NCBI GenBank assembly: GCA_943704425.1
Contig: CALSCP010002822.1
Coordinates: 1-64,000 of the forward strand
Source of the DNA: Ministeria vibrans ATCC 50519
Taxonomy: Eukaryota; Protista; Filasterea
DNA length: 64,000 nucleotides
Reading direction: 5' to 3'
Translations under genes and position numbers: made by a program
Notes under the pieces: generated by a model
Databases searched by the model: none
The model's input: the letters and a program-made list of their open reading frames with translations, nothing else
Told to the model about the DNA's origin: nothing
Shown here: positions 4,086 to 52,675 of the stretch, piece by piece
How the letters are laid out: each line of letters starts with the position of its first letter
Position numbering within the stretch: position 1 is the first letter of the stretch

Positions 4086-5618
4086 TTCAACGTTGACGCT
4101 GTAAGGCATCGCCGGTGCATTTTATCCGAATTGCCTGAACTCTCACCTCGCTAGTCAATTTCCCCGTGTGTTCTGGCTGTTTCCTGTTGCAAACCCTTTG
4201 TGTACTCACCTTACTCGGCAGCTTTCAGGGCTCTATGTTTGTCGGCGGAGTCTAGCTGCAGCGAGCACCCACTCATTGCATGTCCACCACCGCCTACCTC
4301 TGCCCCGCTCTCTACCCAGTCCAAGCTTGCGGTACTCAGCCTTTACAACAACATCAACGCAGCCCTCGAGTGCCGCCCTAACTCTCACCCTAGTCCCAGC
4401 TCTATCTCGGCACTCCCCTCTACCTCCCCACCTCTGCCGAGTGACAGCCCACCACTCAATCTCTTCTGTGTAAAACAGACGCGCCCGCTCACGTCGCGTG
4501 ATGCCCTCACCCTCTTGCCAGCACAGAGACACACTTTGCACACACCTCGCCCATTCAGACAGAAAAATACCGGCTCTATCATAACTCCGAGCCCCACGCG
4601 CCCTCACTCGCGTGGCACACCGATCGACTGCTCGTGTTTTCACCGGAAGAAATGGTGGACACGAGCGAAAGACACAGTGTCATTCTTTGCCGTTTTATTG
4701 AAGGAAGGCAGGGTTTGTGAGACCTCCCGTTCACCGTTAGTTTACATAGGTTCATTTGACCGTCAGTGTAAAAAGCCAAGCAGAGTAAACATGACAGAGA
4801 TTACGAAAAGAGCAAGTTTTTAGATGCGAACCTGGGCGAATCTGAGTAGGTTTTCTATTCCAAAGTGTAAGAAGCGCCAAACCCAGTTCTATAGCTATGG
4901 TTCCTAGTCAGGCTAGCCTGGCTCTATCTCGCCATCGGTCACTGTCTCTCTATCTCTATGGACAGAAAATCCCATGAGACACGGCTCTCTGTTGAATAAT
5001 GGTCAAACAAAGCACGCTCAATCATTGCTTTTAATTTGTGTCGCCACACAGAGTTCCTCTCTTCGTTTCAAATTATCCCCTGTTCAAACTTTGCATGAGT
5101 CTGCCCCTCCCTGTTCCGTCCAGAGAGAAGGGAGTTTCACTACTAAATCTTTCCTGTCAAGGCCGGGGTGCTCTCGAAGTGATATCCGTTCCAACAAAGA
5201 CGTCACACATCCTTATCGAATCTTTATCTTTTAGCTACCACCAACCCACGGCCATCTCGCCACCTGGCCCTGTCTCTCCAACTAAACGGACAGAGAAGAG
5301 CTGTCCTACCACTCGTCTGACTCTCTTTTCAAGCACAGCTGTCCTACTTCGCCCCCGCTTCCACCTCTCCATCCCTGCCATCAAAAAGTTACTTACCACT
5401 ATGCATACCCCTTGCTGTTTCAAACAAAGAAGTCCCAACACCCAACGAGTCCGCGCAATTGAGCTGGGTGCAAACTCGCCTGGCTACATCTCACCCACCT
5501 CCCAACAGAGAAAGTCCCACGGCTCAGTCTTTTCTGTTTGAACCTCGTGGAAACAATCACGATGCTAAATTTCGTTTCACTCCTGTACAAGTCTCAGACT
5601 GGCACGCCAGCATCATCT

Positions 5619-6989
5619 TCACTTTGCTCTTTTAGCCGCTCCACCCCCTCCGTCCTCTTCCTCTCCACTCTCGTCTCTCTCTCGCTTTGTACATCCACCT
5701 TCCTCCTCCACGCCCTCGGGCAAGTCAACGCGCGTGTGCTCTCCAAACAGCTCTCCAAACAGAGGCGCTTCTGGCGGCCACCAGTCACAGCGCTCCGCCG
5801 ACCCCATCACGTCCACCATCTGCTTCAAGCCCCCCTCCAAGCCCGCATCTCCCCCGGCCGTCTCGAGGGCAAAAGGAGCGAGTGTGGCACGGTAGAGGTC
5901 TGGATCGACCGAGGCAGTCTTCTGCACAAACACCTTGTAGTAATAGAGAAGTGTCCCGCCAACCTGTTTGCACCCCATCTGCATCGTGCCACACGCCTCG
6001 TCGGACACGTTCGCGGGCACTCGACAGTCCACCGTGTGGCTGTTGTTGCGCTGGGATACGTATGTCGCCTGTTTCAACCACTGCGCATCCTCACTGTCGT
6101 CGTCGCCCTGCCAGACAAATCCCACTTGTGTGTTCAGCGAGGCGCCATTGAGAAACTCCAGCAGCGACATCATGGAGCGGAACTCTTGTAGCGGTGGCGG
6201 CAGTACGAAGGTCACGGTAAGCATGTCACTGACGGTGTACCGCTGCATGGGAAGCTCCCGGCCATGAATCAATTGCACATACACCCATTGTTGCGTGCGT
6301 GCCAGAGCGCGGAGGGAGCGGAAGCGCGTTTGAAACAGAAAAACAACGGCATGTTCCTGCGTCGATGGACGCGGCAGTTGTCGCAGAGTGGTGGCGACTG
6401 ACGCAGCCGTCACACGCTGTCCTTGGACCCGGAGTGCACGTGCGACCTGCTCCTTTACCTCGGCAATGTCGCCACGAGAGCGCGCCGTCGGCATGAGTTT
6501 CAACAGAGAAACGGGAGTGGGGAGTACGAGTGCGATGGGCTGCGACATTTTCGCCTCGCCTTCGTTGTGGTATGCGACGGGAACGTGGTACACTCGCTCG
6601 CGCTCCTCTTGGCTCCACCGACTCAGGAAGGCCATCGCTCGTTCTTCACGCATACCAGGTGCTTGTCGGATGTACCGCTCTAGCGTCAGCAGGACGTGGT
6701 CCACTTGATCCTTCTGCCATATATACTCGGCACCTTGGAGAAGCGCCGGTGCAGCCACGCACGCGTTCCAGTCCCCAATGCCATCGGTGCCGATGCCGAG
6801 CTGGCCGTCATCACCAAGGCCCTGCACCCCCTCGTCAGCCAGAATCCTCTCGGCCAGCTTGTTGGTGAGTCTCGCGCCAACGCCGCGGCCGCGCTCAGGG
6901 TTGCCGCCCGGCCGCACTCGTGAGCGACCGTGACCGATTCCCGAGGAGCTCAACATTCTCCAGTTGCTTGATAGTGACAAGGTGTGCAT
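5619..6989 (-). CDS. hypothetical protein, intronless, about 456 aa from the first ATG
   Basis: long open frame with natural composition, an acidic tail and a basic end (AAKRAK); no recognised domain; true start uncertain. Confidence 0.55.
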   Translation of the reverse strand: MHTLSLSSNWRMLSSSGIGHGRSRVRPGGNPERGRGVGARLTNKLAERILADEGVQGLGDDGQLGIGTDGIGDWNACVAAPALLQGAEYIWQKDQVDHVLLTLERYIRQAPGMREERAMAFLSRWSQEERERVYHVPVAYHNEGEAKMSQPIALVLPTPVSLLKLMPTARSRGDIAEVKEQVARALRVQGQRVTAASVATTLRQLPRPSTQEHAVVFLFQTRFRSLRALARTQQWVYVQLIHGRELPMQRYTVSDMLTVTFVLPPPLQEFRSMMSLLEFLNGASLNTQVGFVWQGDDDSEDAQWLKQATYVSQRNNSHTVDCRVPANVSDEACGTMQMGCKQVGGTLLYYYKVFVQKTASVDPDLYRATLAPFALETAGGDAGLEGGLKQMVDVMGSAERCDWWPPEAPLFGELFGEHTRVDLPEGVEEEGGCTKRERDESGEEEDGGGGAAKRAK

Positions 6990-9615
6990 GGACACGGATG
7001 CAGACGACCTGGTCGACGGCCATGCTGCTCATGAGGCTGCACACAGTCTCGAGGCTGCCTCAATTGTTGCTCACCCAGGCGGTTTCACTGGCGCCATGTA
7101 CTCGGCCTCAGGCGCCTTTGTCGTCGCACCCACTTCGCGCGTGGAACTTTCTAGTACTGTCGTGCACGCCACGGCCGCGCGTGCGCGTGTCCATCTCTCT
7201 GCCTCCTCTGTCACAGCCGAATTTGTCCCTCCCGCCAGTGCTCGTGATGCCCCCGTCGCTCCTGGTTCCGCTACTGAAGTCGAACGGGGTGCGTCATTGA
7301 CCACTGCCCCGTTGACGACGCCGATCGATGCAGACTATTTCGCTCCTTGCTCCAATGTTGCTGCTCAGTGGCTAGAGCACAGCAATGGCCTGCACAATCG
7401 CACCATTGGAGGTCTCGCGCGTGCAGACAACGTCGCTCAGGATGTCGCCGTGCTCGCCCGGCCCGAGCCAGGTGAGGCACTTGCCTCCACAACAGCGAGC
7501 GGTCGCCTCACGCCTGCCGAGCTTGAATTTCGTCGTCGCCATCGTGGCTCCTTTGAGCTCCTGTTGCATCGTGCAGTCACGCCTGATGGTCCAAACGAGA
7601 GTCTTCTTGGTGTGCCGTTCGCCCCATCGACGATTGTCGCCGGTGCCGCCCGAAGCGCTTCGCCGTCCGTTGCCGCAGCTCGCGTGCTTGCTCGCTCGCA
7701 GGTTGCTTTCGCTGGTCACACCCCACCCACTATTGCTGAGGTCGCGGTTCTCTACAGTCTCAACGAGCTGCAGCATCGCGCGTTTACTCTAGCCGCGCTG
7801 GAACTCTTTCGTCACATGCTACGGGACCGTTCGCTCGCCTTGCCTGCAAATGCAAGTCGTGCGCGTCGCGAAGCCCTTGACGACGCTCGTAAGCGCATTA
7901 ATGTGCACTTTCAGCATGCGGGCGACGAAGGTTTACGCATGGCATTGCAGGGGCAGGGTGGCACTGGCAAGACAGAGGTTGTCAAGGCCATCATGTATTT
8001 TGCTGAGAGGTGGGGAATCGCTTCACACGTTGCTCTCACCGCCAGTACCGGCTCAGCTGCTATCAACATTGGGGGTGACACCGTTCACTCCTACGTGGGT
8101 ATCAGCGGTGTCAAGCGCGACCGAGAGCAGGAGAATTTGCCTCCGAACATTGCCCAACGCATCCGCAGCACGTGGTTGCTCGTCATTGACGAAATTTCCA
8201 TGCTGCCGGCCGACGTGCTTGGCAAGACGCTCCTGCGTTACGACAAAGTCGGCAAAGCTGTCCGCCAGCTTGCGTCCTTCCTCATCCTCGGTGATTTCTA
8301 CCAATGCGAGTGCGTCGGCGTCGGCGTCCACAAGATCTCCGCCAAAATCGACTCAGCTCACGCCCTGCGAGGCATTGACTTTTGGCGCAATCAAATCAAC
8401 TGTGTCATTCTTCTCACTGAAAACTGGCGCTCCAAGGGGGACCCTACCTTCCAGAGTATTCTCACAGCAATGCGCAATGGCTACAACGGCCCTCCAAACT
8501 CACTCACACCAGCACAACTCGCTCTTCTCAACTCTCGTGTGGTCGGCACAGAGACCGACTCGGGTGTTCCTCTCACCGTCCCTCGCAGCGCCAATGTCGT
8601 CTCTGCCACCAACAAAGTCCGTCGGGCCCTTGTTGTGTACGACTTTGCACGCGAGATGCTCCAACGCCAGTCAATCGCTGCCGCCGTCACGCCTCACATA
8701 AGCGCCGATGCCCAGCGCTATGGCATTGCGCTTCGAGCCCACCTGTGCGGCGCAAGCGATGCCGACATTGCACGTGTCTTTCTCACCCTTCAGTCGCGCG
8801 ACGTCACCGATCAGAGCACACTCAACACGCCCCATTGGAAACTTCAAGGTCGCTGGCCCACCTTGCGCCTCTATGTTGGCCAGGAAGTCTCCTTCACCTC
8901 CAATCTCTGTGTGTCCAATGGAAGTGTCGGCAATGGCACTCGCGGTACCGTTGTCGGCTTTGCCTTCCACCCTGGCACCACCTTCACACTCGTGCGCGAA
9001 CGCTGCGTTGTCTCCCCTACACCATCCGCTGCTGCCACCAGCGCTGACCCCCAACCGCCTATCAAACTCGACTACCCACTGCTCGTGCCCACACCCCCGC
9101 GGATTGCCGGTCAAGATCCCCTCACTCCAATCATCGCTGTTTTCGTCAAGGTGCCCGATGCCTCCTTCCCCTCGTTTTCCGGCCTTCCTTCAAACGTTTA
9201 CCCTGTCCTATACCCACCCAAAACTGTAGCTGCCGGCTGTGCTGATCGCCCAATTCGACTCAACGTCCGCTACGGCTCCCGTCCCCCTTTCACAGTCATC
9301 TTTCGTCAGTTGCCCATTGAGCCCGCCTGCGCCACAACCATTCACAAGTCCCAGGGTCGCACCTTTGACAACGTCTACATCGCCGACTTTACTCGTCGCA
9401 TCGGCATCCTCTACACCGCCATCTCACGCTCCCGTTCCCTCACGGGCATCTTCCTCCCACGAACTCTGCTCGCCAAAGACATCATCGCGTGTCGTCTCAC
9501 TGGTGACCTCCTTGACAACCACAAGCGCCTTGAGGTCAAAGCCGCCGCTTGCCGCAAGCGTGACGGCCTTCTCTCCGTCGCCGAGGCGCGCAGCTCGACA
9601 AATGCTATTTCCTAA
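6988..9615 (+). CDS. Pif1-family SF1B DNA helicase resembling Helitron/Helentron helicases, intronless
   Basis: LNELQHRAF, GQGGTGKT (Walker A), TASTGSAAINIGGDTVHS, LVIDEISM (Walker B), GDFYQ, LTENWR, NGTRGTV, QLPIEPACATTIHKSQGRT, LYTAISRSRS. Confidence 0.9.
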   Translation: MDTDADDLVDGHAAHEAAHSLEAASIVAHPGGFTGAMYSASGAFVVAPTSRVELSSTVVHATAARARVHLSASSVTAEFVPPASARDAPVAPGSATEVERGASLTTAPLTTPIDADYFAPCSNVAAQWLEHSNGLHNRTIGGLARADNVAQDVAVLARPEPGEALASTTASGRLTPAELEFRRRHRGSFELLLHRAVTPDGPNESLLGVPFAPSTIVAGAARSASPSVAAARVLARSQVAFAGHTPPTIAEVAVLYSLNELQHRAFTLAALELFRHMLRDRSLALPANASRARREALDDARKRINVHFQHAGDEGLRMALQGQGGTGKTEVVKAIMYFAERWGIASHVALTASTGSAAINIGGDTVHSYVGISGVKRDREQENLPPNIAQRIRSTWLLVIDEISMLPADVLGKTLLRYDKVGKAVRQLASFLILGDFYQCECVGVGVHKISAKIDSAHALRGIDFWRNQINCVILLTENWRSKGDPTFQSILTAMRNGYNGPPNSLTPAQLALLNSRVVGTETDSGVPLTVPRSANVVSATNKVRRALVVYDFAREMLQRQSIAAAVTPHISADAQRYGIALRAHLCGASDADIARVFLTLQSRDVTDQSTLNTPHWKLQGRWPTLRLYVGQEVSFTSNLCVSNGSVGNGTRGTVVGFAFHPGTTFTLVRERCVVSPTPSAAATSADPQPPIKLDYPLLVPTPPRIAGQDPLTPIIAVFVKVPDASFPSFSGLPSNVYPVLYPPKTVAAGCADRPIRLNVRYGSRPPFTVIFRQLPIEPACATTIHKSQGRTFDNVYIADFTRRIGILYTAISRSRSLTGIFLPRTLLAKDIIACRLTGDLLDNHKRLEVKAAACRKRDGLLSVAEARSSTNAIS

Positions 9616-40549: not shown

Positions 40550-41487
40550 TATATATATACAAATATATATACTCTCTCCTCTCTCTCATTCTGTTTTACC
40601 CAAACTTGTCCCAGACAATGTCACTGATAAAGATGGAAGCAATGTTGCACTGTTGAGTGAGTTCGCGAAGACGCAGAATCACCGCTAAAAGAGTGGCGGG
40701 GAAACGAGAGTCGCGCAAGCGGTTGGCCCTGTCAAAGACAAGGAAGACGGGCGTCGTCGGTTGCCGGTCGTCCCGCTCGTCCATGGGTGCACGATCACCA
40801 TCGTTGTGAGTGGTGGATAAAGTGTTATGATCGCATGTCTAAAAAGTGCAGCGTACAAAACAGCATAGTCAGAGAGAGGGAGAGAGAAAGGAGAAAGGTA
40901 CAAGTGATAGAAACAAAAGCAAGTGACAGAAACAAGTGATGGAAACAAAAAGAAATGATAGAAACAAGTGAAAAAAACCAAGTAAGTGAAACAAGGGAGT
41001 AAAACAAGTGAGCCAAACACGTGATAGAGGCGAGGCGTACCGTTTTGAGGTGACGGACAAAGTCATTGATGTTTTCACACCTGACCCACGGCCGAAATTC
41101 ATTGTCCTAGCGAAGCCAATCGAGGGGTAAGACAAAACATGGGATGTGTGGGTGGGTGGAGTGCAGAGGGGGCCGGTACCGGGGACGAAATGTGGCCATT
41201 GAGCTGATTGAGAATCGATTCAAAGACTGTGCGCGTTGACAGGGCGTCGATGCAGTTGATCCAGGCGACGCGTTGCTGTCCCTGGAGCAGTCCTTTGACA
41301 ACCTCCGTCTTTCCAGTGGCTGTGTGACCATAGACAAACACGCTGTTGGGCGGCGACTGCAGCGGGAAGGCAAGGGTCAGGAGAAATCGATGGCATTGAG
41401 TGTTTTGGTGTGTACGCCGTTGAGGAGAAGTCTTCTCAGCGTATCGATTTGCTTTCGTCTTTCGGGAAAGGTCTCTTCCAATGACAT
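39190..41487 (-). CDS. ORC5: origin recognition complex subunit 5
   Basis: MSLEETFPERRKQIDTL, FVYGHTATGKT, LVFDRANRLR, HFPSYS, LPFYAKYLLIAAFLASYNP, GPATFPLDRLLAIF. Confidence 0.95.
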
Positions 41488-41813: not shown

Positions 41814-44800
41814 ATGGCCGCATCTCTCAAAGGTAAGAAAATCTTCTCCATGGGACGCTAGCACGAGCGGTCTTCTTTGGTTCTTTTGTTCCTTGCGCGA
41901 AATCCTTTTTTTTTCTCCCCTTTGCGTGTAAAAGAGCGACTATATCTCCCTGTTGGTCGTCACAATCATTCCCCAGAACCAGTGTAATGCCGTTTCCTTT
42001 GCGATAAAGAAGCTTACGCTGTCCTTTGTTATATTAACTTTGTGTTTTTTTTTTTCGTTGATGTGTTTCAGAGATTGATGGGCTGCAACGGTCGTACCGC
42101 CAGGGTCTCATCCTTGCTCGGTGCGACTACAGCGACCTTGTCGACCCATTCACTGCGAATACAGCGTCGCCGCAGCTGTACTTTGGCCATTTGCCGGGTG
42201 CGTTGATTGCCGCTCGAAACACTGCCGTTGGGATGCTCCAAAACGGATACGATATTGTCTCCGTGCTCGCCGACAAGCGCCTTACACCAGACGGATCGGT
42301 GCCGTTTGGCAATGATCAGTCGTTCTTTGGCGAGAAGCCGACCGGGTTGACGCCGGAGGAGGAGGCGGAGGAGACGGCCCGTGCTACGTTTGCTGCTGAC
42401 TCCATCAACAGCGGCCGCTTGCTGTGGGTCGTTGCACCCAAGCTTCCTCGTGCCGACATTGCCGCGTGCATTGACACGCTTGAAAAGATGAAGCCAAAGG
42501 TCAACGGCCAGGTTAAGGGCCCTGCCGGCCCCAAAACCGAGCTGACTGTTTGTCTTATCGGTCACGGTGTTATGAACGAGGAGGGAGACTATGCGGTCGC
42601 CTTCAACCATATCCGTCTTGTACCTCGCAATGTGGGCGTGCGTGTTTTTGATGGCTACACCTTGGCACAGCTGCTCGACGATCTGACGCTCAAGACGCGC
42701 TGGAAGCATCTTCTCATCATCGCCGACACCTGCACCGCTGGTACCGCACTCACCAAGGACTCCTACGTGCCAGACAAGGCAGAGATGTTCCTTGATGATG
42801 TGTGGACTCTTGCGTACCACACACCGTCGTACCAGTTTATTGGATCATCGCTGAACGGCACGCAAGGACTTGCTCTGTTGCCTTGGCAGGGAACAGTGTT
42901 CTCAATGGCAATGGATCGAGTGCTTTGGCACTCGAACCCAACTGCCTTTCAAAACCCTGGCGGTACAACGCTCTACAACTGGGCGACAGTGGGACATGTT
43001 GGCGAGAGACTGCGCGAGAGCATGAATGCCATCATGGAGGAGTTCTTTCCCACCGACACCGACCTGGCTCCAACGTGTCTCCATGGCCGTCTCGACCTCG
43101 TTCACTGCAACGTGACACAACCCAATGAGGGACACTTTCTTTTTGTGCGTCATGGCGCACCAGCGAAGTGGACTCGTGGAGACATTACTCAGTCACCTTA
43201 TCATGTAAGCAAATCAAGACCCCTCAACATTTTTTTAAAAATTTCTATATTTGATTTATTTTCTAGCGAACGCCCACTTCCGCAACCTCCATTGCTACAA
43301 CACCGCATCCATTGACACAACCGACCAATTCTGCCACTCTCTCGCGCATTCCTCTCTCTGAAACCCTTTCTATTCTCAACCACGACTGGTCTCGACACAT
43401 CCTCATTGTTGTGCCTCAACTCGACTCACTGCGTCCCGACATCCTCGCTGCTCACCGCTGTGGCCTTGACGAGCCCTTTGCTCCCTTTCAAGAATGGGTT
43501 GGCTCAGATGATTACTACTGCTACAGCCTCTATTGTCATACACTCGCGATCTCACTCACATTCATTCTCATTGTGCGCGCCCCATCGCCCGATTCTTGCG
43601 TTGCTCGTCTCGCGCTCCTCTGGCAACCCGACCTGGTTGAGTTTTACCCTGTGGAGACCGGAGAGAAGCTTCCGAACCGCGTGGTTGTTGTGCGCAATCT
43701 CATCACCAACCCACCTCAATCTACTGCGTCTCATTTGCCTCCGAGTGCCTTCAGGAGGCAGCGCCTCTCGCTTGGTGAGACCACTCAACGTCTGGGCGAT
43801 CTGTCACTCCCATCTGCCCTCAGTTCTCTGCGCGTACAACCTACCACACCCGACGACACAACTGTCCGCATCAATGCTTTTCAGGACATGGGCTCTTGCT
43901 CGTGTGGCTGCTGTGCACGCTGCGGCATCCGCCGAGTAGTGATCCTCACCACCTCTGCTGTGAGCTTGACTGCTGCGGAGCGCGTTGACCTGCTCTACGC
44001 CTGCGCAGCTGCCTCTTCTCGCCTGCTGCCTGTTGACAAGCTCACGCAATCTATTTCCTGTTCCAAAACGGTTCGCTTTGAGGCCCTTTTTCGCGATTTG
44101 TGCTCTGAAAGGCTCGCAAAGGAGCGCGACCTACTGCTGCTCGCTCTGCGCGACACACTGTGGTGCAATTCATGTCCGAGCCAAGACATCAGTGCTCTTT
44201 TTCGCTTGCACCATCACCGTCCTGGCGCAGACAACTCCCTCCAGCTCCACTTTGAGGCCCCACCATCATTGCTCTGGTCTTTACTCTCATCCTCAACTTC
44301 CAACAGCAAACTTGTCGATCTTGGCTTTGACCATGTGTGTGAGCCCACACCGACATTGTACCTCTCTGTTGCACTGCGAACTCGCGACGCAACCGTCACC
44401 AAACCTCTCTCACAGGACACAATGAATGGCATTGTCGACTCAGTCGTCTCCTACGTCCAGTCAGAAATATTCCCTACTCGCGGCTTTCTCCCTCGCCTAC
44501 ATATCTCCACCGCCGCTCAGACCATGTGGGTTGTGCTGAAGCTACCCGAAGACGTTACTTGCGAAGAATACTGTATTCTTGGCGGACTTCTCATGACGAA
44601 TGTACCTCCGGTCATTCAAGAGCGTGCCGTAACAAGTATACGGATTGTGTACGAGGGAGAAGATGAGCATGTGCGGTTGCTGGCGGAGCAGCTTTCAAAG
44701 CACGCCCAATCTCTTCCCGATTCTCGAGCACATGCACATGCTTTCCTGCGAAAAGCCTGGGAGGTGTACACTTTGGACGACGAAACTGTGCGCCGCGTTG

Positions 44801-47800
44801 CGCTTATCGATGCACTTCGATTTGACCTTGTGGCCACAGTCAAAGTGCTCGCATTACACATGGAGAACGACTGCCGTCTCATTGATGTCGTGACTCACAA
44901 CGGTGACGGCGCTGCCGCTATTGCTGCGCGACATAGTGCGACAACGACTCTTGCTTGGCTGCTCAGCAGTGAATGTGGGGTGCGTTGGGATGTTCAACAG
45001 CTTTTTGAGGCGGCCTTTGATGGGGACTCGGAGAGTGTTGTTGAGTTTCTGTACGACCAGTGTGGGCTTGGTCGTGTCTTGACGAGCGACACTGTGAAGG
45101 ATTTGGTGGGTCGTAAGAAGTTTACCGTTGCTGCGTGGGTCTGTACCAAGCTCAAGTTGGAGCTGACTGACTTTGCTGTGGCGACGCTCGAGTCAGTGAT
45201 GGACGCCACTCTTGCTGCTCATCGTTGGTCCGACTGGCACGCAGTGCTTGCGCAGCAGTACCTCAAGAAGGCCACGGGCTTGGCGAGGGCCAAAGCGCTC
45301 GAACACGCGAAAGAGGCACTGCAGTTTGCCTTTGACGATCAACGTCGTGTGGTTGCGTTGCGCGTAATGGCTGAGCTTGAAAAATGGGAGGAGATTGTGT
45401 CTGCTGTGCGTCAAGTAATCCGTCACGTTCACGACCGTGAGATTGTACTCATGTTTGCTTGTGCTCTGTACTGGTCTGGTCAAGGGGATTCAGCGTTGTC
45501 ATATTTGTGTCGCCTTCTCACCACTCCTGCTGTCGTTGACGACGTGGACTCGGTCGAGCCAGGCGATGTATCAAGTGTGCTTTCGCTTGTGTTGATTGGC
45601 CGTGCTGTCAAGATTGGCAGCATTCCCGTGAATATGGAAGTGTTTTCGCAAGTGTTGTCGACTCTCAAGGTTCTGCCTGAGTCTTTTGCTCGTGATTGTT
45701 TGAGCTGGTTGAGTGGCCATTTGGAATCTGACCTGTCGTGGCTTGCGTGGGTACGCTCAGAGCGAATTGCCTTCTTAGCGTCCATCCGCGGATCGGATGC
45801 CGATTTCACTGCTCCGCAACTTGAGTGTGTAGAGCCTGATTCGGACTTGTGGTTGCCTCATCGGCGCGTACAACTTCGTGAACTCTCGGCTCGGTTCTGT
45901 GAACTATCGGCTCGATTGGGCATGCAGCAAACCGAAGACCATGCTCAGTTTATTGCTACGCTTGTCGAACCCATGCCATCGCCGGATTGTCTAGCAAAGA
46001 TCAGTCAACTTCAGGTTCTTGATCTGTCGGGTGCCCTTGCGTCTAGTGGCGTCTTACCGGTGTGTTTGGTGGACGGCAGCCTCACGTTGCAAGTGAAAAT
46101 TTTGATCCTGAGTAACAACGAGCTGGTGGTCCTGCCTGCGAAGCTGTTTCTTTCCTCAAAACAGCTTTTGCGTTTCATCGCCGATGACAACAAGCTTAAG
46201 TGTTTGCCCTCGTCCATTGCGTGCTGTTCCGACCTTGTGACACTATCTGTGGCAAACAATCGTCTTTTCACATTGCCTGAGTCTCTGTCCAAGCTCAGGT
46301 GTTTGCGTGAAGTCAACTTGAGTGGAAATGAGCCACTTCTTTCTCTCGCACGTTTGCCCAATTTGCGCGTACTTTCTCACCTAGCCGAGTCGCTTCAGAT
46401 TCTGGATATGCACGTGGAAGGTGCACCAAGGGTACCTATGCAAGACCCAAGACTGTGGTGTGCAGAGCAGGCATGCACTACTCGCTTGACTCTAAGTCGA
46501 TTCGCAGAAGGTTGGGAAGAGTGTTACTCCATATCACCATGCTAATAATTTATTGAATTTTAGACGTATACCAAGCGGCCATGTTGGATCAATCGCCTTC
46601 TGCCTCCTCTGGCGTGACTGTGATTGTCGGAGGCGAGCCGGCCGCTGGCAAGACAACTTTCTTCCGTGGCATGCTTTGCAAGACATTTGTGCCTGTGCAT
46701 CGCAAGACATGGTATGCGACCGTGTCGTACTGCGACCCGCTGTTGGAGGAAGCGGCGTATGTTGATGAGGAAGACTCTCTTGCGACCACGTCGCTGATTG
46801 AGCGCTCGGCGATTCCCGGCTCCAAAGACACGTCGTGGGAGACGTCTGCGATGAGTCGAAAGATTCATGAGATAACTGTCAATCGAATCTCCAAGGAATT
46901 TGAAGTGACTGCTAGTGTGCGGTCTAGTGTGACAGAAGCAAGTGCGGCCTTGCAAGTTGAATCTCGCGAGAGATCATCGGAAAACGATCCATTGAGTTTG
47001 ATGACCATTGACACACCAAGCGGAAGCGACTTTGATGTTGGCCCCTCCACCTTTGGTGGGGCCGGTGGAACTGGCTCGGGAGCGTCAAGTCGTCTCCCAC
47101 CACTGCAGCCGCCCATTGTTCCTACGACCGCTTCTACCGATGCACCAAGCGTTGAAGTCAAGACGAGCACGGTGCAAGCAGACGTCTGTCAAGTTGTAGC
47201 GAGTTCTCGCCATGCTGTGCTCCCTCGCATTGCCTTCGTTGACCTCGGTGGCCACAGGGAGTTCCGTGTGGTGCAGTCCATTGTCCCTTTTGCGTCGTCG
47301 CTCTATGTTGTCGTGGTTGATTTGGAGAAGATGCGCATGTCGCCAGGGGAGGTCAGATTGGAGGAGTGGCTGACCCTTTCGGCAGTGAAGCAGGCGCGAA
47401 CAGTGATGATAGTTGGCACTCGTGCGAGCACGAGTGGCTACAAAGATTTTGACTTTGAAGCTGAGGCTGCTGGCAGTGATTCGTTTGAGGGCGTGCAAGA
47501 GTCTGTGCGTGAGGTACTGGAGCGACTTGGGCTGCAGTGGTGGGGTGACAAGCCAGTTTGGCCTGTGGACTACGCTACGGATCTCCGCGTTGACGAGCTG
47601 CGTGTGGAGGTGTTGCGTGCCGCCAAAGATGTTGGTGAACAGGTGCGATCGTCTACCCAGATGGCAGTGGCGATGGATGCTGTGCGTACATGTGCAGGTG
47701 GTGGTGCGTTGAGTGTGACCAAGGATGAGGTGCAGCAGTGTCTGGCATCACATCGAGTTCTCTTTCATGAGTATGTGTACGAGGCAAAGCGTGTTGGTGC

Positions 47801-50800
47801 TGCTTTTGTCGATGCTCGACTGCCTGAGCATGTTTTTGTGGATGTGCCGTGGTTGGTGAACGCTGTGGGTTGCATGTACAGCACTGTGCTGGAGAAGGAA
47901 GTGAAGGAAGAGGAGGTTGGAGCGGCGATTTTGCATGATTTGGAGGTGTTACGCGAGCGCGGGGTGTGGACAGAGGCGTTGGTGGATTGGGCGTTGTCGC
48001 AGACTTGTTTTGACGACGCATCATCGTTGAAGCTGCTGCTTCTGCGATGCATGGAACCTCTTCCAACTGAAAAAGTTCATGCTATGGCACCGTCTCCTCC
48101 AGAGGTTTGTGTTGGTCGTGAAGAGCAGATTGAGAAAATTCGACAGATGAAGAGCGACCGTGTCATTGCGTTGCGGGGACGAGGTGGAATGGGTGCGAGT
48201 ACACTCGCTGCACTGTATGCCGCTAAACACGCGTCGCTGTATCACTCTGTCTTGTGGGTCCGTGCCATGACTGCAACATCCATCGCTGCTTCGTTCCGTG
48301 CCTTCGTTGAGTATACATCTCTTGTTGGGGTCAACTTGACGACGACAACTGATGCTGAAATTGCGCGCGTTGTAAACGATTGGCTCTCGCGCTCATGTGG
48401 CTGGTTGATGGTGATGGATGGGTGCGATGACCTGGCGCTGTTGAGGAAGAGCATGCTGGGAATCAGCCCGTTTGGTGGAAGATTGGTTGTTGTATCATCG
48501 AGGCTGTCGAATGAACTGTCTGCCGAAATGCTTGGAATGGAAGTGGAGCTGGTGGAAGTGAAGGAATTTGATCTTCAGAAGGGAGTGGAGTTGATGAAGA
48601 ACCGACTGGAAGCCCGGTCTGGCGAAGAAGAGGAGTTGAAGAAGATTGTTGGGCTACTGGGAGGCATGCCGTTGGCAGTGGAACTGGCAACCGGATATTT
48701 GTCAACTGTGACACATATGAGTGGTGCGGAGTACCACGCTCAACTGTATTCTGTGCTTCGAGAGCGGCCTGGAGAGGACGAGTGGAACTCCCGCCTTGTT
48801 TCCTCTTTTTTGCCGTGTCTGTTTTGGGTATTGGAGTCGAGAGCGACGAAGGTGATGGTGAAGAAGATATTGAGTGTGATGGCGTTCTTGGAAACCAGTT
48901 TGGTGGATGTGTCGCTGTTGCGTGCGCTTGTGATGAGGAGGTGTGTGGAAGATGGCACTAATGCATTGGATCAATTTCAGTCTGCTCTTGAGAAGCTTTG
49001 GCGTGTTGCCATCATCTCTCGGCTGAACGAAGAGTTTATCTCAATGCATGCTTTGGTCCGAGATATGTGTCGGATTCTGATGTTTGATGATGCAGAGCAG
49101 AGGTGGGATTTTCTCAAAACAATGGGATTTTCGATTCTCGGAGAGTTGCGTGTCCTTGAAAACGAACTTTCTCCTGATAATATGGACCAGAATCGTCGTT
49201 TGGGCGAGCAAGGAATGGCGATTTTTGAGTGGTCGTGTGATGAACTAGTTGCGCTGCGGCGAAGGAATGCATCGGGGAGCGCATCAGGGGATGAAGAGCA
49301 CATCGTCTCGCTCGGAATGTCTCTTCACCGGATGTGGAGTGTGACTGGGAATGCATCACGTTCACGCGAGTGCAGATCTATGTTGGATACTCTTGATATT
49401 AGACCGTATGTATCAGACAAAATTTCACCGTGACTTTTTTTGATTGATTTCGTCCTTTTTTTTTTAGGACGAGGGCGTTTCGATCTGCTTTTTATGCAAC
49501 ACTGGAACGGGGCTTTGTAGAGACGCGCTCAATCAAACTGATGTGCTTTGGAAGTACGGGAGCAGGAAAATCGTCACTTCTTTGTGCCTTGCGCGGACTG
49601 CCACTGCCACAGATGAGAGATCGTTCCGTGGCCATCCAAATGCAGCGAGTGCGAATGGTCGATCACGCACACTTGAGGGTCTTTGAGGCAGTGCCACAGG
49701 AGGAGTTTCGCATTGCCAGTCTCATTGGTCCGCCTCGTGAAGAAGGAGACGTGCATCAGGAACCTGCGCGGGGTGCGCCAGCTGCTGGTGAAGCAGAGGC
49801 GACCCACTCAATGTCTGAGCCAATTTCACCGACTACCGCTCAGACAGCTACTCCAAGCTTTGAGACGTGGTTTAAGAAGGCCGCTGATGGTCTCTCGACC
49901 CCCTCAGAGCGCGTCTTTCGCCCACGCGCGTCTGTCCGTCCTATATCACAGGTATTTTTGGAACCGACCCTTTCTGCGCCATCTGGTTCGATGGCTTTCA
50001 CCCCTGCTTTAGCAGCAGCAGTGTGCGCTTTGCTCGAGTCTGAGTTGCAGGAAGATCGGGTTGAACTTGAGGCATTTGACTTTGCTGGTACTTTCAACAG
50101 AGCACAGCACAAGACAAGCACAATATTCATAATGTTTCTTTATATAGGCGATGAGATGTTCAACTTGCTCCCTACGCTCTTTATGGGATCCGAGTCCGCC
50201 TACATCCTCGTCTTTGACCTGTCCGTCATGAACGACGCCACACAAGCACAGCGGCAGTACGAGCACCTGTCCAAGTGGGCTTACCTGATTGCGCACCAAG
50301 TGCCGGAGACGCTCTCGTCGTACTTCCGTGTGCTCATTGTGGGTACCCATCTCGACACGTTCCCCGACGACACTGCGCCGTCCTTGCTGCTGCGCACTGT
50401 CTCGAAAGAGATTGATCGCGTTGTGGGACCGGTGTTGGGCAACCACTTAATTCTGCCTGGGTCTGGTCGCACTTCGTTCTTCCAAGTGGGCAGCGCAAAG
50501 GGCATTGGCCTGCGCGAGCTCAGCGAGGGGATTCATGCTGCAGTGCGTCGTCGGCGATTGCCACTGGAGTATGTCTGTGCACAGGATCTGGTTGGTCGAT
50601 GGTCGCGGATGGGCCGCATTGAGCTGCTGTCGTCTGTCGCTGATCTGCCGAGTGTCGTTTTGAGTGAGACCACACCGGTCATCACAGTCGGGTCGCTGGT
50701 CCCCGACGAGCACGCACTGCGCACAGGACTGGTGCCATACCTTGAGGAGGCTGCTGATGTGTTGGTGTGTCGTGAGGACTCGAGTGCGCGAGGCGTGAGT

Positions 50801-52675
50801 ACTTCGGACACAATTGTGTTTGATGTGCCACGTTTGATTGCGGCTGTTGAGTTGTTGTGCTCGGTGGTGATGGCACAGTGGAAGCGGGCGACGAGTGATC
50901 GCGCGCTTGACATGCTTGATCTGGTGAAGGCAGCAGGACGGCGACTGGACAACAAGAAGACGTTGAAGCTGTTTGCGGAGCTGGACGAGGCACGCCATTT
51001 CTCGGAAGAGGGATTCCCTGTTGACGTTGCGTTGTGGCTCGTGTGGACTGCGGCGGCGCGTGAGGCGAAGGGTGAGCCGCTTTTGGCTGGTGCGGACATC
51101 TCAGACGGGCCGTCGCTCTTTTCGGCGCTTGAGCGACTGAGTCTTGTGTTCCAACACTACACTCGTCTGCTCGTGCCGATGCTTCTGCCTGAACATGCAC
51201 CGTTTGTTGAGAAAGCGACAGCCGCACCAGTACAGGTAATGCTGTACCAGGTGATGAAAGACGAAGAGGACACGCGCTCCGTGCTTCCCGTGTCACTGGC
51301 GACCTTCCATCTGGTTGTGGTGGCGCTGTGGCGCGAGACGATGAATGTGTGTGCGATCCGAGCGACTCAGCGATGCACGGATGTGCTTGTGATGGACAGG
51401 TGTGCTCCGGTGCGAGTGCGTCTCAATGCGGGTGAGGATTTCATCCGTGTGGAGGTGTTTGACGATGGGGGACCACCTGAGCGAGTAGTGGCGACGTTGC
51501 ATCGGGTGAGCACGGGAGTGTGTGACCAGACGCGGAGTCTGCGGTGGGGATGGCGCGGTGTGCCTGTGCTTGTGCCCGCGAGTCCAACGAAACCATCACT
51601 GCCTCTGTTCCGACCATTGGAGGTGGCTGCGTCACCCGAGGTGTACCGTGAAGAAGGGACGCTGGGTGCGGTGCTGCACAGCAAGGAACCGCGGGTGTGC
51701 AACGAGAAGCTTGAAGAGTGGTGGACCAAACGAGTCGGTAAGTGGCGACGAAGAGACAACATAATCCATATTTTGTCTTGTCTTCTCTCATTATTGTCAA
51801 TTACTCGTGTATTATATTTAGGTGTCACAATGTCGCGGCGGTACGTTCACGTAGCGGCATTAATTGTGGGTGTGAGTCGCTACGATTCGACAACGAATCC
51901 TCAATTGGCGGCCTTCCCTGATTTGCCTGGAGTGCGTTGGAGTGTGAGCGCACTTGCAAAGCTGTGGAAGGGACGCGGCTTTAGCGTGCAAAGTGTGACG
52001 GACACGAACACATGCGACCAAGTGACGGGGGTGGAGATTGGGGCAGCTGCACGTCGATTGGCGCGAGATGTGGGAGATGGAGTAGGTCGAGATGCGCTGC
52101 TGATTGTGCACTTGCTGGGCCACGGGGCGGAGGACAGTCAAGGTGGTCTGCTGCTGAGTGATGCCAGCTCCTCACTCAACGGTGGCCAAACGCGATTCAA
52201 CCTTGATGCGCTCAAGGGTCTGCTTTCGGCTGAGATGGGTTGGCTTGGTTGCAATATTCTGGTTGTGTGTGATTTCTGCTGGTCGGGTGCGCTGCTCAAG
52301 GCGGAGCACGACCTGGCATTTGCGAGCCCAGTCGCTCAGTATGGGTACTCGCGCCAGCTGCTTGCCAGCTCATTGGCGGACACGAACAGTTACATGTCAC
52401 ACAAGCAAGTGCCATTGACCCAACCTGATGGAACTGTGGAGATGGTCTCCAAGTACACTCGTCTGACTGAGTTGCTACTGCGCGCGCTAGGACCAACAAC
52501 ACTGGAGGCGTTTTGCGACGGTGAAGAGCACATCACTGCGTTGGGACTACGGCAGAGACTGCGGGAGATGGACACGGCGAACACGTGCCAAGCGATGATG
52601 GTGGGGCGCATTTGGGACGATTGGCGGGGCACGCGCAACGACGGAGACATTTTGTTGTATAGGGATGGGAAGTGA
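41814..52675 (+). CDS. giant ~3,433-aa protein: caspase-like(C14)-ankyrin/TPR-like-LRR-Roc-COR-NB-ARC-Roc-COR-caspase-like(C14)
   Basis: exons 41814-41832, 42072-43204, 43267-46510, 46564-49405, 49468-50087, 50148-51737 and 51822-52675 sum to 10,302 nt (divisible by 3) and every GT-AG junction keeps frame; motifs IGHG/ADTC, LRR LILSNNELVVLP, GEPAAGKTT, DLGG, GRGGMGAST, WLMVMDG, GGMPLA, MHALV, GSTGAGKSS, DFAG, VGTHLD, LGHG/CDFC. Confidence 0.85.

Follow-up and report, generated by a model that had tools for sequence, protein, structure and literature searches.

The gene described here lies at positions 41814-52675 on the forward strand of contig CALSCP010002822.1 (assembly GCA_943704425.1) from the filasterean Ministeria vibrans ATCC 50519, within the 64,000-nucleotide (nt) stretch that was analysed (positions 1 to 64,000, hereafter the window). 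It comprises seven exons encoding ~3,433 amino acids (aa), and can be identified with good confidence as an expressed, intact chimera, in which two caspase folds, two Roc units (one of them with a verified COR domain), an NB-ARC module and leucine-rich repeats (LRRs) are combined. Its exons, introns and principal motifs are as follows, in window coordinates.

41814..41832, forward strand: exon 1 (predicted), 19 nt encoding MAASLK plus 1 nt, phase 1, donor GTAAGA
41833..42071, forward strand: intron 1 (predicted), 239 nt, GT..AG
42072..43204, forward strand: exon 2, N-terminal caspase-fold domain
42563-42565 and 42731-42733, forward strand: candidate catalytic His (LIGHG) and Cys (ADTCTAG) of exon 2
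43205..43266, forward strand: intron 2 (predicted), 62 nt, GTAAGC..TAG, 24% GC, in frame
43267-46510, forward strand: exon 3, an orphan region (43267..45996) followed by LRRs (45997..46380)
46511..46563, forward strand: intron 3, 53 nt, spliced in RNA
46564..48071, forward strand: exon 4, first part, Roc-like G domain 1 (Roc 1) and ~160 aa of putative COR
46632-46655, 47241-47252 and 47412-47429, forward strand: Roc 1 motifs, respectively P-loop GEPAAGKT, DLGG and a degenerate G4, VGTRAS
48105..49405, forward strand: exon 4, second part, NB-ARC STAND module
48129-48761, forward strand: Pfam NB-ARC match, E 1.3e-8, 34.9 bits against a gathering score of 23.5
48177-48203, forward strand: Walker A motif GRGGMGAST, with Ala at the Lys position
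49406..49467, forward strand: intron 4, the fusion joint, 62 nt, spliced in RNA
49468..50087, forward strand: exon 5, first half of the second Roc domain (Roc 2), ending inside switch II between FDFA and G
49550-49573 and 50339-50356, forward strand: Roc 2 motifs, respectively P-loop GSTGAGKS and G4 VGTHLD, with DFAG between them across intron 5
50088..50147, forward strand: intron 5, 60 nt, in frame, spliced in RNA
50148..51737, forward strand: exon 6, remainder of Roc 2 and the full COR
51738..51821, forward strand: intron 6, 84 nt, in frame, spliced in RNA, with evidence partly at the level of the family
51822..52675, forward strand: exon 7, C-terminal caspase/metacaspase-type domain, stop codon TGA at 52673-52675
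52121-52123 and 52277-52279, forward strand: catalytic dyad of exon 7, His (LLGHG) and Cys (DFCWSG)

The original prediction, made from the DNA letters, had linked four separately listed open reading frames (ORFs) of 374, 1077, 950 and 1044 aa into a single chain by way of six AT-rich, phase-keeping GT-AG introns. All four ORFs are present at the places stated for them, and frame arithmetic bears out the proposed structure: the exon lengths (19+1133+3244+2842+620+1590+854) add up to 10,302 nt, or 3,433 codons plus TGA, and each of the six introns runs from GT to AG and preserves the frame, with an interior GC content of 24-41%, as against 50-58% in the exons. Database searches and fold comparisons were run exon by exon rather than on the joined protein, while the Pfam scan, the Roc 2 comparisons and the search for metagenome homologues of exons 5-7 used a translation that reads through the in-frame introns 5 and 6.

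Splicing was followed in four public runs aligned to positions 46480-52479. Contigs of runs X1 and X5, which belong to different studies, skip 46511-46563, 49406-49467, 50088-50147 and 51738-51821 exactly, with GT..AG ends, whereas a contig of run X11 carries 47589-50197 unspliced; the first two runs are therefore spliced RNA, and the third is DNA. Intron 3 is skipped by a 2,255-nt X1 contig that reaches ~1.2 kb into exon 3, and a second X1 contig extends from 47600 through the NB-ARC module and across introns 4 and 5 into exon 6 without a mismatch. Intron 4, at which the two halves of the gene meet, is also skipped in an X5 contig with 0 mismatches, and DNA and RNA contigs are identical across it; the fusion joint thus has RNA from two studies behind it, and an independent DNA contig as well. 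Two technical explanations were considered and rejected: an assembly artefact at the joint, since independent DNA and RNA contigs agree there with 0 mismatches, and a processed DNA copy as the origin of the spliced contigs, since the DNA run has only the intron-containing form.

From position 50150 on, many paralogous contigs pile up on the window, and the joint across intron 6 could stem partly from paralogous transcripts. Contig depth over 50150-52479 rises 10- to 20-fold in all runs, with many variant contigs, because the family to which exons 5-7 belong (the Roc-COR-caspase family) is multi-copy. Beyond the loose contig ends at 51737 the sequence, once translated, is similar to the beginning of exon 7 in a paralogue, and these ends therefore represent paralogous transcripts rather than alternative splicing. 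Runs X6-X10, which are labelled as another organism, contain contigs ~90-97% identical to exons 6-7 only (50156-52377), derived either from a related species with the Roc-COR-caspase family or from a mixed sample.

An RNA check had been proposed for all six junctions; it bears on introns 3-6, and introns 1 and 2 are predicted by comparison with paralogues. Exon 3 opens right after a stop codon and lacks a methionine before aa 208, yet is conserved from ~aa 25; exon 2 is conserved from aa 1 and lacks a methionine before aa 54. The closest paralogue, on contig C1075, keeps exon 2 ahead of exon 3 and has a 76-nt intron, GTAAGA..CAG and in frame, at the equivalent place, and a metagenome contig (ENA ERZ23497041, scaffold_5408, locus L018) is collinear through exon 2 and then exon 3. 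On these comparisons junction 2 is likely. The paralogues of the N-terminal domain that are readable here all permit an ATG first exon of 19-40 nt in phase 1, some with similar peptides, and the first-exon peptide MAASLK is identical in the metagenome relative; junction 1 is plausible, and an alternative first exon of 85 nt, starting at 41481, would also be possible.

The N-terminal domain, encoded by exon 2, had been predicted to be a C14 protease. It has no match in Pfam, NCBIfam or PADLOC, and does not reach the gathering score of Peptidase_C14; among the 30 Atlas (language-model) clusters nearest to exon 2, however, 29 are Peptidase_C14. An AlphaFold model obtained from nine family sequences (predicted local distance difference test, pLDDT, 75; predicted template modelling score, pTM, 0.83) retrieves procaspase-1, MALT1, Yca1, caspase-9 and TbMCA2 as its top Foldseek matches (E 2e-6), and the top of the 86 matches at E<=1e-3 consists entirely of caspases, paracaspase or metacaspases. 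The alignment of these domains shows no variation at His164-Gly165, and of the 8 copies that reach Cys221, 7 have the cysteine; in the model, strands 156-168 and 212-220 end at the candidate His and Cys. Exon 2 is accordingly assigned, by predicted fold and conserved motifs, to the caspase-haemoglobinase fold (clan CD). A search for relatives returned one metagenome protein, with a length filter that would hide longer ones, and no related locus in prokaryotic genomes.

The first ~900 aa of exon 3 form an orphan region with no recognisable domain: aa 1-900 match nothing in Pfam, NCBIfam, PADLOC, Atlas or PDB profiles, and a search of exon 3 against 1.84 billion representatives gave matches only in the LRR part and no full-length relative. 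The ankyrin-like and TPR-like helices proposed at 44870-45520 were not recovered, either by Pfam (E<=1) or by PDB profile. A cysteine-rich segment, CSCGCCARCG, at 43897-43926 within the orphan region is a possible metal-binding or lipidation site. The LRRs, expected at ~46000-46410, are found by Pfam at 45997-46380 as ~5-6 repeats (LRR_8, E 1.2e-8, plus LRR_4 and LRR_14), and match thousands of LRR proteins in the representatives search.

Where the original prediction had placed a first Roc-COR, at the start of exon 4, the Roc half survives scrutiny better than the COR half. Roc 1 carries a ~170-aa insert and keeps its P-loop and DxxG motifs intact; it scores 20.8 bits against Pfam Roc (E 4.9e-4; cut-off 27), aligns by hhalign with the Roc family of the second module over the G domain only (probability 57%, E 1e-4), and has no PDB match. 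In the ~160 aa that follow, no COR was found by phmmer, PDB profile or hhalign. We tentatively read Roc 1 as a partly degenerate Roc-like GTPase domain.

The second part of exon 4 contains the NB-ARC module, close to its predicted extent (~48090-49080). In addition to the Pfam match listed above, it matches NCBIfam FxSxx_TPR with an E of 5.6e-33 (profile positions 9-337 of 830) and aligns to Roq1. Walker B (LMVMD), sensor-1 (SSR), a GLPL-like GGMPLA and an MHA with the MHD histidine (49041-49055) are all retained. At the Walker A lysine position there is a GCG codon (Ala), two base changes away from Lys and identical in sequence in independent DNA and RNA contigs, while three readable paralogues retain the lysine as GVGKST (GGVGKST) or GTGKT. 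Exon 4 ends where a paralogue on contig C837 starts its TPR_12 array, so that, with respect to the layout of a STAND receptor, there is no repeat sensor C-terminal to the nucleotide-binding oligomerisation domain (NOD); the LRRs lie upstream, before Roc 1. No homologous metagenome protein was found for exon 4, in a search whose length filter would hide longer relatives.

Exons 5 and 6 encode the second Roc-COR, predicted at ~49520-51550. Removal of intron 5 restores FDFAGDEMF, which matches WDFAGHEEF of LRRK2. The similarity of Roc 2 to the LRRK2 Roc is weak in sequence (E 0.019), and its Pfam Roc score is 19.2 bits against the cut-off of 27; it has a long insert, and exon 5 is conserved in dozens of paralogues. 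With its G motifs, Roc 2 looks functional and near-canonical. The AlphaFold model of exon 6 (pLDDT 89) has as top Foldseek matches LRRK1, the C. tepidum LRR-Roc-COR, RocCOR and COR structures, LRRK2 and M. barkeri Roco2 (E 3e-8 over ~490 columns). COR itself is recognised at the level of fold (LRRK1, 6hlu, 3dpu, 3dpt, which is COR alone, and 4wnr), and no Pfam COR match occurs in 22 members of the Roc-COR-caspase family. The motifs and the modelled fold together identify exons 5-6 as a Roc-COR tandem of the Roco type, as predicted.

The C-terminal C14 protease, predicted at ~51830-52670, is recognised directly in exon 7 (Peptidase_C14, E 1.4e-5, 25.3 bits against a gathering score of 21.4), and 13 of 16 paralogues match the same family, the best at 1.9e-10. 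Exon 7 also matches the NCBIfam model 'caspase, EACC1-associated type' (E 1.9e-9), and a profile of its family finds Arabidopsis metacaspase-4. The catalytic His and the catalytic Cys are each retained by all paralogues that extend over the position, and the DxCxSG motif, together with a conserved Asp in LLLSDA, suggests a metacaspase-like specificity for a basic P1 residue. For exons 5-7 no homologous metagenome protein was found (the length filter would again hide longer relatives), and metagenome contigs yielded no locus related to the Roc-COR family.

Comparison with the 29.7-Mb genome that holds the gene indicates how it was put together. The N-terminal domain type has at least 28 matches, most of them placed immediately before an NB-ARC and sharing a single open frame with it; for exon 3 there are just two paralogues, on contigs C1075 and C837; and the Roc-COR-caspase unit of exons 5-7 recurs as a unit in ~45 or more loci. 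The C1075 and C837 genes consist of caspase, orphan region, LRR, Roc, an internal caspase-like domain and NB-ARC; in C837 the N-terminal caspase was not seen in the stretch examined, and strong TPR_12 repeats (E 3e-47) follow the NB-ARC. In the usual members of the Roc-COR-caspase family the Roc exon is immediately preceded by WD40 exons (by ankyrin in one copy), and has a conserved acceptor in front and no start codon. In the window gene the end of the NB-ARC module is joined to that Roc-exon acceptor through the 62-nt intron 4, with neither repeat array (TPR or WD40) and no internal caspase-like domain. The front of the gene is 45-73% identical to C1075/C837, and exon 6 is 87-93% identical to paralogues on C1638, C2355 and C73, and the intron positions are the same. 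Among the copies found, the window gene alone links the two families, and it has lost the Walker A lysine; in no other locus examined does NB-ARC lie upstream of the Roc-COR-caspase unit. Judged by these relationships, the gene is chimeric, its two parts deriving from two receptor-like families of this genome. Its front (caspase fold, ~900-aa orphan region, LRR, Roc-like domain, NB-ARC) would come from a rare giant lineage that normally continues into TPRs, and its back (Roc-COR-caspase) would represent the constant module of the other family, whose members usually open with WD40.

Several observations concern the paralogues themselves. At locus L043 (457-774, contig C883), ankyrin repeats (Ank, E 1.6e-13) stand in for WD40 ahead of the Roc exon, so that in the Roc-COR-caspase family the sensor position is swappable. 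At locus L017 (contig C73, ~4700-7100), an array of 80-nt tandem repeats lies directly upstream of a Roc-COR-caspase copy, in the place expected for the WD40 exon; the adjoining copy shares 87% identity with exon 6 of the window gene. In C1075 (L009 from 9286 to L010 1383), the internal caspase-like domain has lost both catalytic residues, with VYMMCAS in place of xGHG and LDTSDS in place of DxC, and the internal copy of C837 has Ser for Cys; these domains look like pseudo-proteases before an intact NB-ARC.

Pairwise ratios of nonsynonymous to synonymous substitution rates (dN/dS) are 0.16-0.37 in every piece of the gene, which indicates purifying selection, although constraint on the paralogue also enters into a pairwise ratio. 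Between exon 6 and its nearest copies dS is only 0.13, and the back half is therefore a recent duplicate. Between the window gene and C1075 (L009) there are blocks with zero synonymous differences at ~42220-42375, 43790-44260 and 44860-45340, flanked by sequence in which the proportion of synonymous differences (pS) is 0.55-0.8. These blocks, in exons 2 and 3, are sharp gene-conversion tracts, as in fast-evolving receptor families. At L018 (1485-4087), the exon 3 part is 95% identical to the window gene and the exon 2 part 71% identical and C1075-like, so that this locus may be either a strain-level mosaic or a third paralogue.

We consider it moderately probable that this locus is one expressed gene, fused from two families, whose product is a protease regulated by nucleotides and activated by assembly, and part of a system for conflict, immunity or regulated cell death. 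Roco proteins dimerise through COR and cycle in a GTP-dependent manner, STAND modules oligomerise, and caspase-type proteases are activated by proximity. Activation of the chimera might begin with binding of a ligand or partner at the LRRs or the orphan region, or with capture of the chain by its relatives through NB-ARC and COR interfaces. The nucleotide state of the near-canonical Roc 2, which would be the live switch, would then change, and contacts made by COR and NB-ARC would bring the caspase-type domains together, switching the proteases on. Because the Walker A lysine is absent, the NB-ARC module would more likely be a scaffold than an ATP switch. The observed basis of this scheme is a transcribed gene with identified folds and motifs, whereas the protease and GTPase activities, the oligomerisation and the biological role are inferred.

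The original prediction of an all-in-one receptor stands in so far as proteases, two GTPase units, a STAND ATPase and LRRs are found in one expressed frame, and falls short in that the parental TPR and WD40 sensors and the Walker A lysine have been lost. Several points weigh against the receptor-protease scheme. With both parental sensor arrays absent, the classical circuit of sensor, switch and effector may be broken; the NB-ARC lysine codon is replaced by GCG, the G4 motif of Roc 1 is degenerate, and neither the first COR nor the ankyrin/TPR helices were recovered in searches. The evidence for constraint comes from pairwise ratios, RNA support covers junctions 3-6 only, so that the N-terminal caspase could in principle be a separate transcript, and an immune or cell-death function is itself inference.

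Two of the alternatives draw their weight from the missing parental sensors and the missing Walker A lysine. The gene could be a young chimeric by-product of frequent recombination within its families, transcribed and intact but without integrated function, and heading to decay. Its uniqueness in the genome would fit such an origin, as would the dS of only 0.13 that separates exon 6 from its nearest copies, the active exchange recorded in the gene-conversion tracts, and the loss of the TPR and WD40 arrays, the Walker A lysine and the G4 of Roc 1. A decaying by-product is harder to reconcile with a 10.3-kb reading frame without a stop, with four junctions correctly spliced in two studies, and with intact catalytic dyads and a dN/dS well below 1 in every piece; we regard it as fairly unlikely. 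Alternatively, the protein might act as a sensor-less helper, adaptor or regulator, coupling caspase-NB-ARC-TPR receptors (through NB-ARC) to WD40-Roco-caspase receptors (through Roc-COR), and relaying or damping their signals. Paired plant NLRs provide a precedent, having STAND modules with a dispensable or lost P-loop. The chimera retains the assembly modules of both families and neither repeat sensor, and COR is described as a dimerisation domain in a passage of PMC7159879 that cites Gotthardt 2008. The argument for a helper is purely architectural, however, and sensing could reside in the LRRs and the 900-aa orphan region; a helper is distinctly improbable in our judgement.

That the locus instead gives rise to two or more separate products (an N-terminal caspase, a Roco-NB-ARC protein and a Roc-COR-caspase protein, each with its own transcript, the spliced contigs being read-through) seems very improbable. 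In favour of separate products, RNA support is limited to junctions 3-6, contigs cannot prove a single full-length molecule, and the overlap between the X1 contigs, which lies within exon 4, is just 19 nt long. Exons 3 and 5, however, have no start codon upstream of conserved sequence, stops lie immediately outside each exon, and contigs that run on through the unique exon 4 lack introns 3, 4 and 5, with the frame preserved. A bolder suggestion is that a Roco switch and a STAND module stand in series between two caspase-type proteases, forming a two-input cell-death gate, or else a sensor-less hub that couples ~20 caspase-NB-ARC-TPR genes with ~45 WD40-Roco-caspase genes; we hold this to be quite unlikely as it stands.

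Should the proposed function be correct, this genome would hold a large repertoire for immunity or cell death, in which caspase-type proteases are fused to NTPase switches, and which would include a GTPase-based (Roco) branch without a described counterpart. As the gene demonstrates, recombination can bring modules from both branches together in a single expressed protein; this bears on the origin of apoptosome-like and inflammasome-like machines and on the processes that Roc-COR switches (of the LRRK2 type) govern outside animals, as well as on the diversification of receptor families by exon shuffling and gene conversion. It also provides a compact setting for testing how Roc-COR controls a fused enzyme. 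What is new here is the chimeric origin and a fusion layout for which no report was found: in line with the original prediction, which knew of no described protein of this architecture, a literature search returned no paper describing this layout or combining Roco, NB-ARC and metacaspase, and the papers it returned that contain both 'Roco proteins' and 'caspase domain' describe no fusion.

Bacterial STAND and conflict systems already follow the principle of a single chain that holds a sensor, an NTPase switch and a caspase-type effector (PMC3501461, PMC4986451, PMC7159879). Caspase-STAND fusions are known in bacteria (PMC3501461), an 'all-in-one' STAND layout has been discussed for fungi and bacteria (PMC4986451), and the Roc-COR 'AP-GTPase' occurs in prokaryotic conflict systems (PMC7159879). 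In brown algae, LRR-ROCO and NB-ARC-TPR families are candidate receptors, the only ROCO-linked peptidase belongs to a different family (IPR009003, group 3), and their unicellular relatives are said to have four or fewer ROCOs (PMC3341825, PMC11378527).

Like the window gene, bacterial caspase/metacaspase-STAND proteins (metacaspase-NACHT-WD40, metacaspase-NB-ARC) place a protease and an AP-ATPase/NACHT switch in one chain (PMC3501461, PMC4986451, PMC7159879). Exon 7 is most similar to bacterial EACC1-associated caspases, but at 37.3 bits against the NF047832 cut-off of 140, and the NB-ARC module to a bacterial FxSxx-COOH NB-ARC-TPR protein, but at 114 bits against a cut-off of 300. In contrast to these bacterial systems, the window gene is eukaryotic and contains introns, has two proteases and two added Roc units, and has no C-terminal repeat sensor after its NB-ARC.

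With Roco proteins (LRRK1/LRRK2, C. tepidum, brown-algal LRR-ROCO; PMC11378527, PMC3341825) the window gene shares the order of LRR then Roc, and its second unit shares with LRRK2 the Roc-COR tandem fold and the THLD variant of G4. It departs from them in its output, which is a caspase-type protease instead of a kinase or nothing, and in a chain with two Roc units, a STAND ATPase between them and ~170-aa inserts in both Rocs.

The third point of comparison is provided by the Apaf-1/CED-4 apoptosome and the NLR inflammasomes, from which the window gene differs in having neither WD40 nor LRR after the NOD and no Walker A lysine. No CARD or Death fold was matched in any exon (Pfam, NCBIfam); in the Apaf-1/CED-4 systems the caspase is a separate protein recruited through CARD, whereas here it is covalently fused. 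Both arrangements bring together an NB-ARC-type oligomerisation module and caspase-fold proteases, and activation by induced proximity is therefore plausible for the window gene as well.

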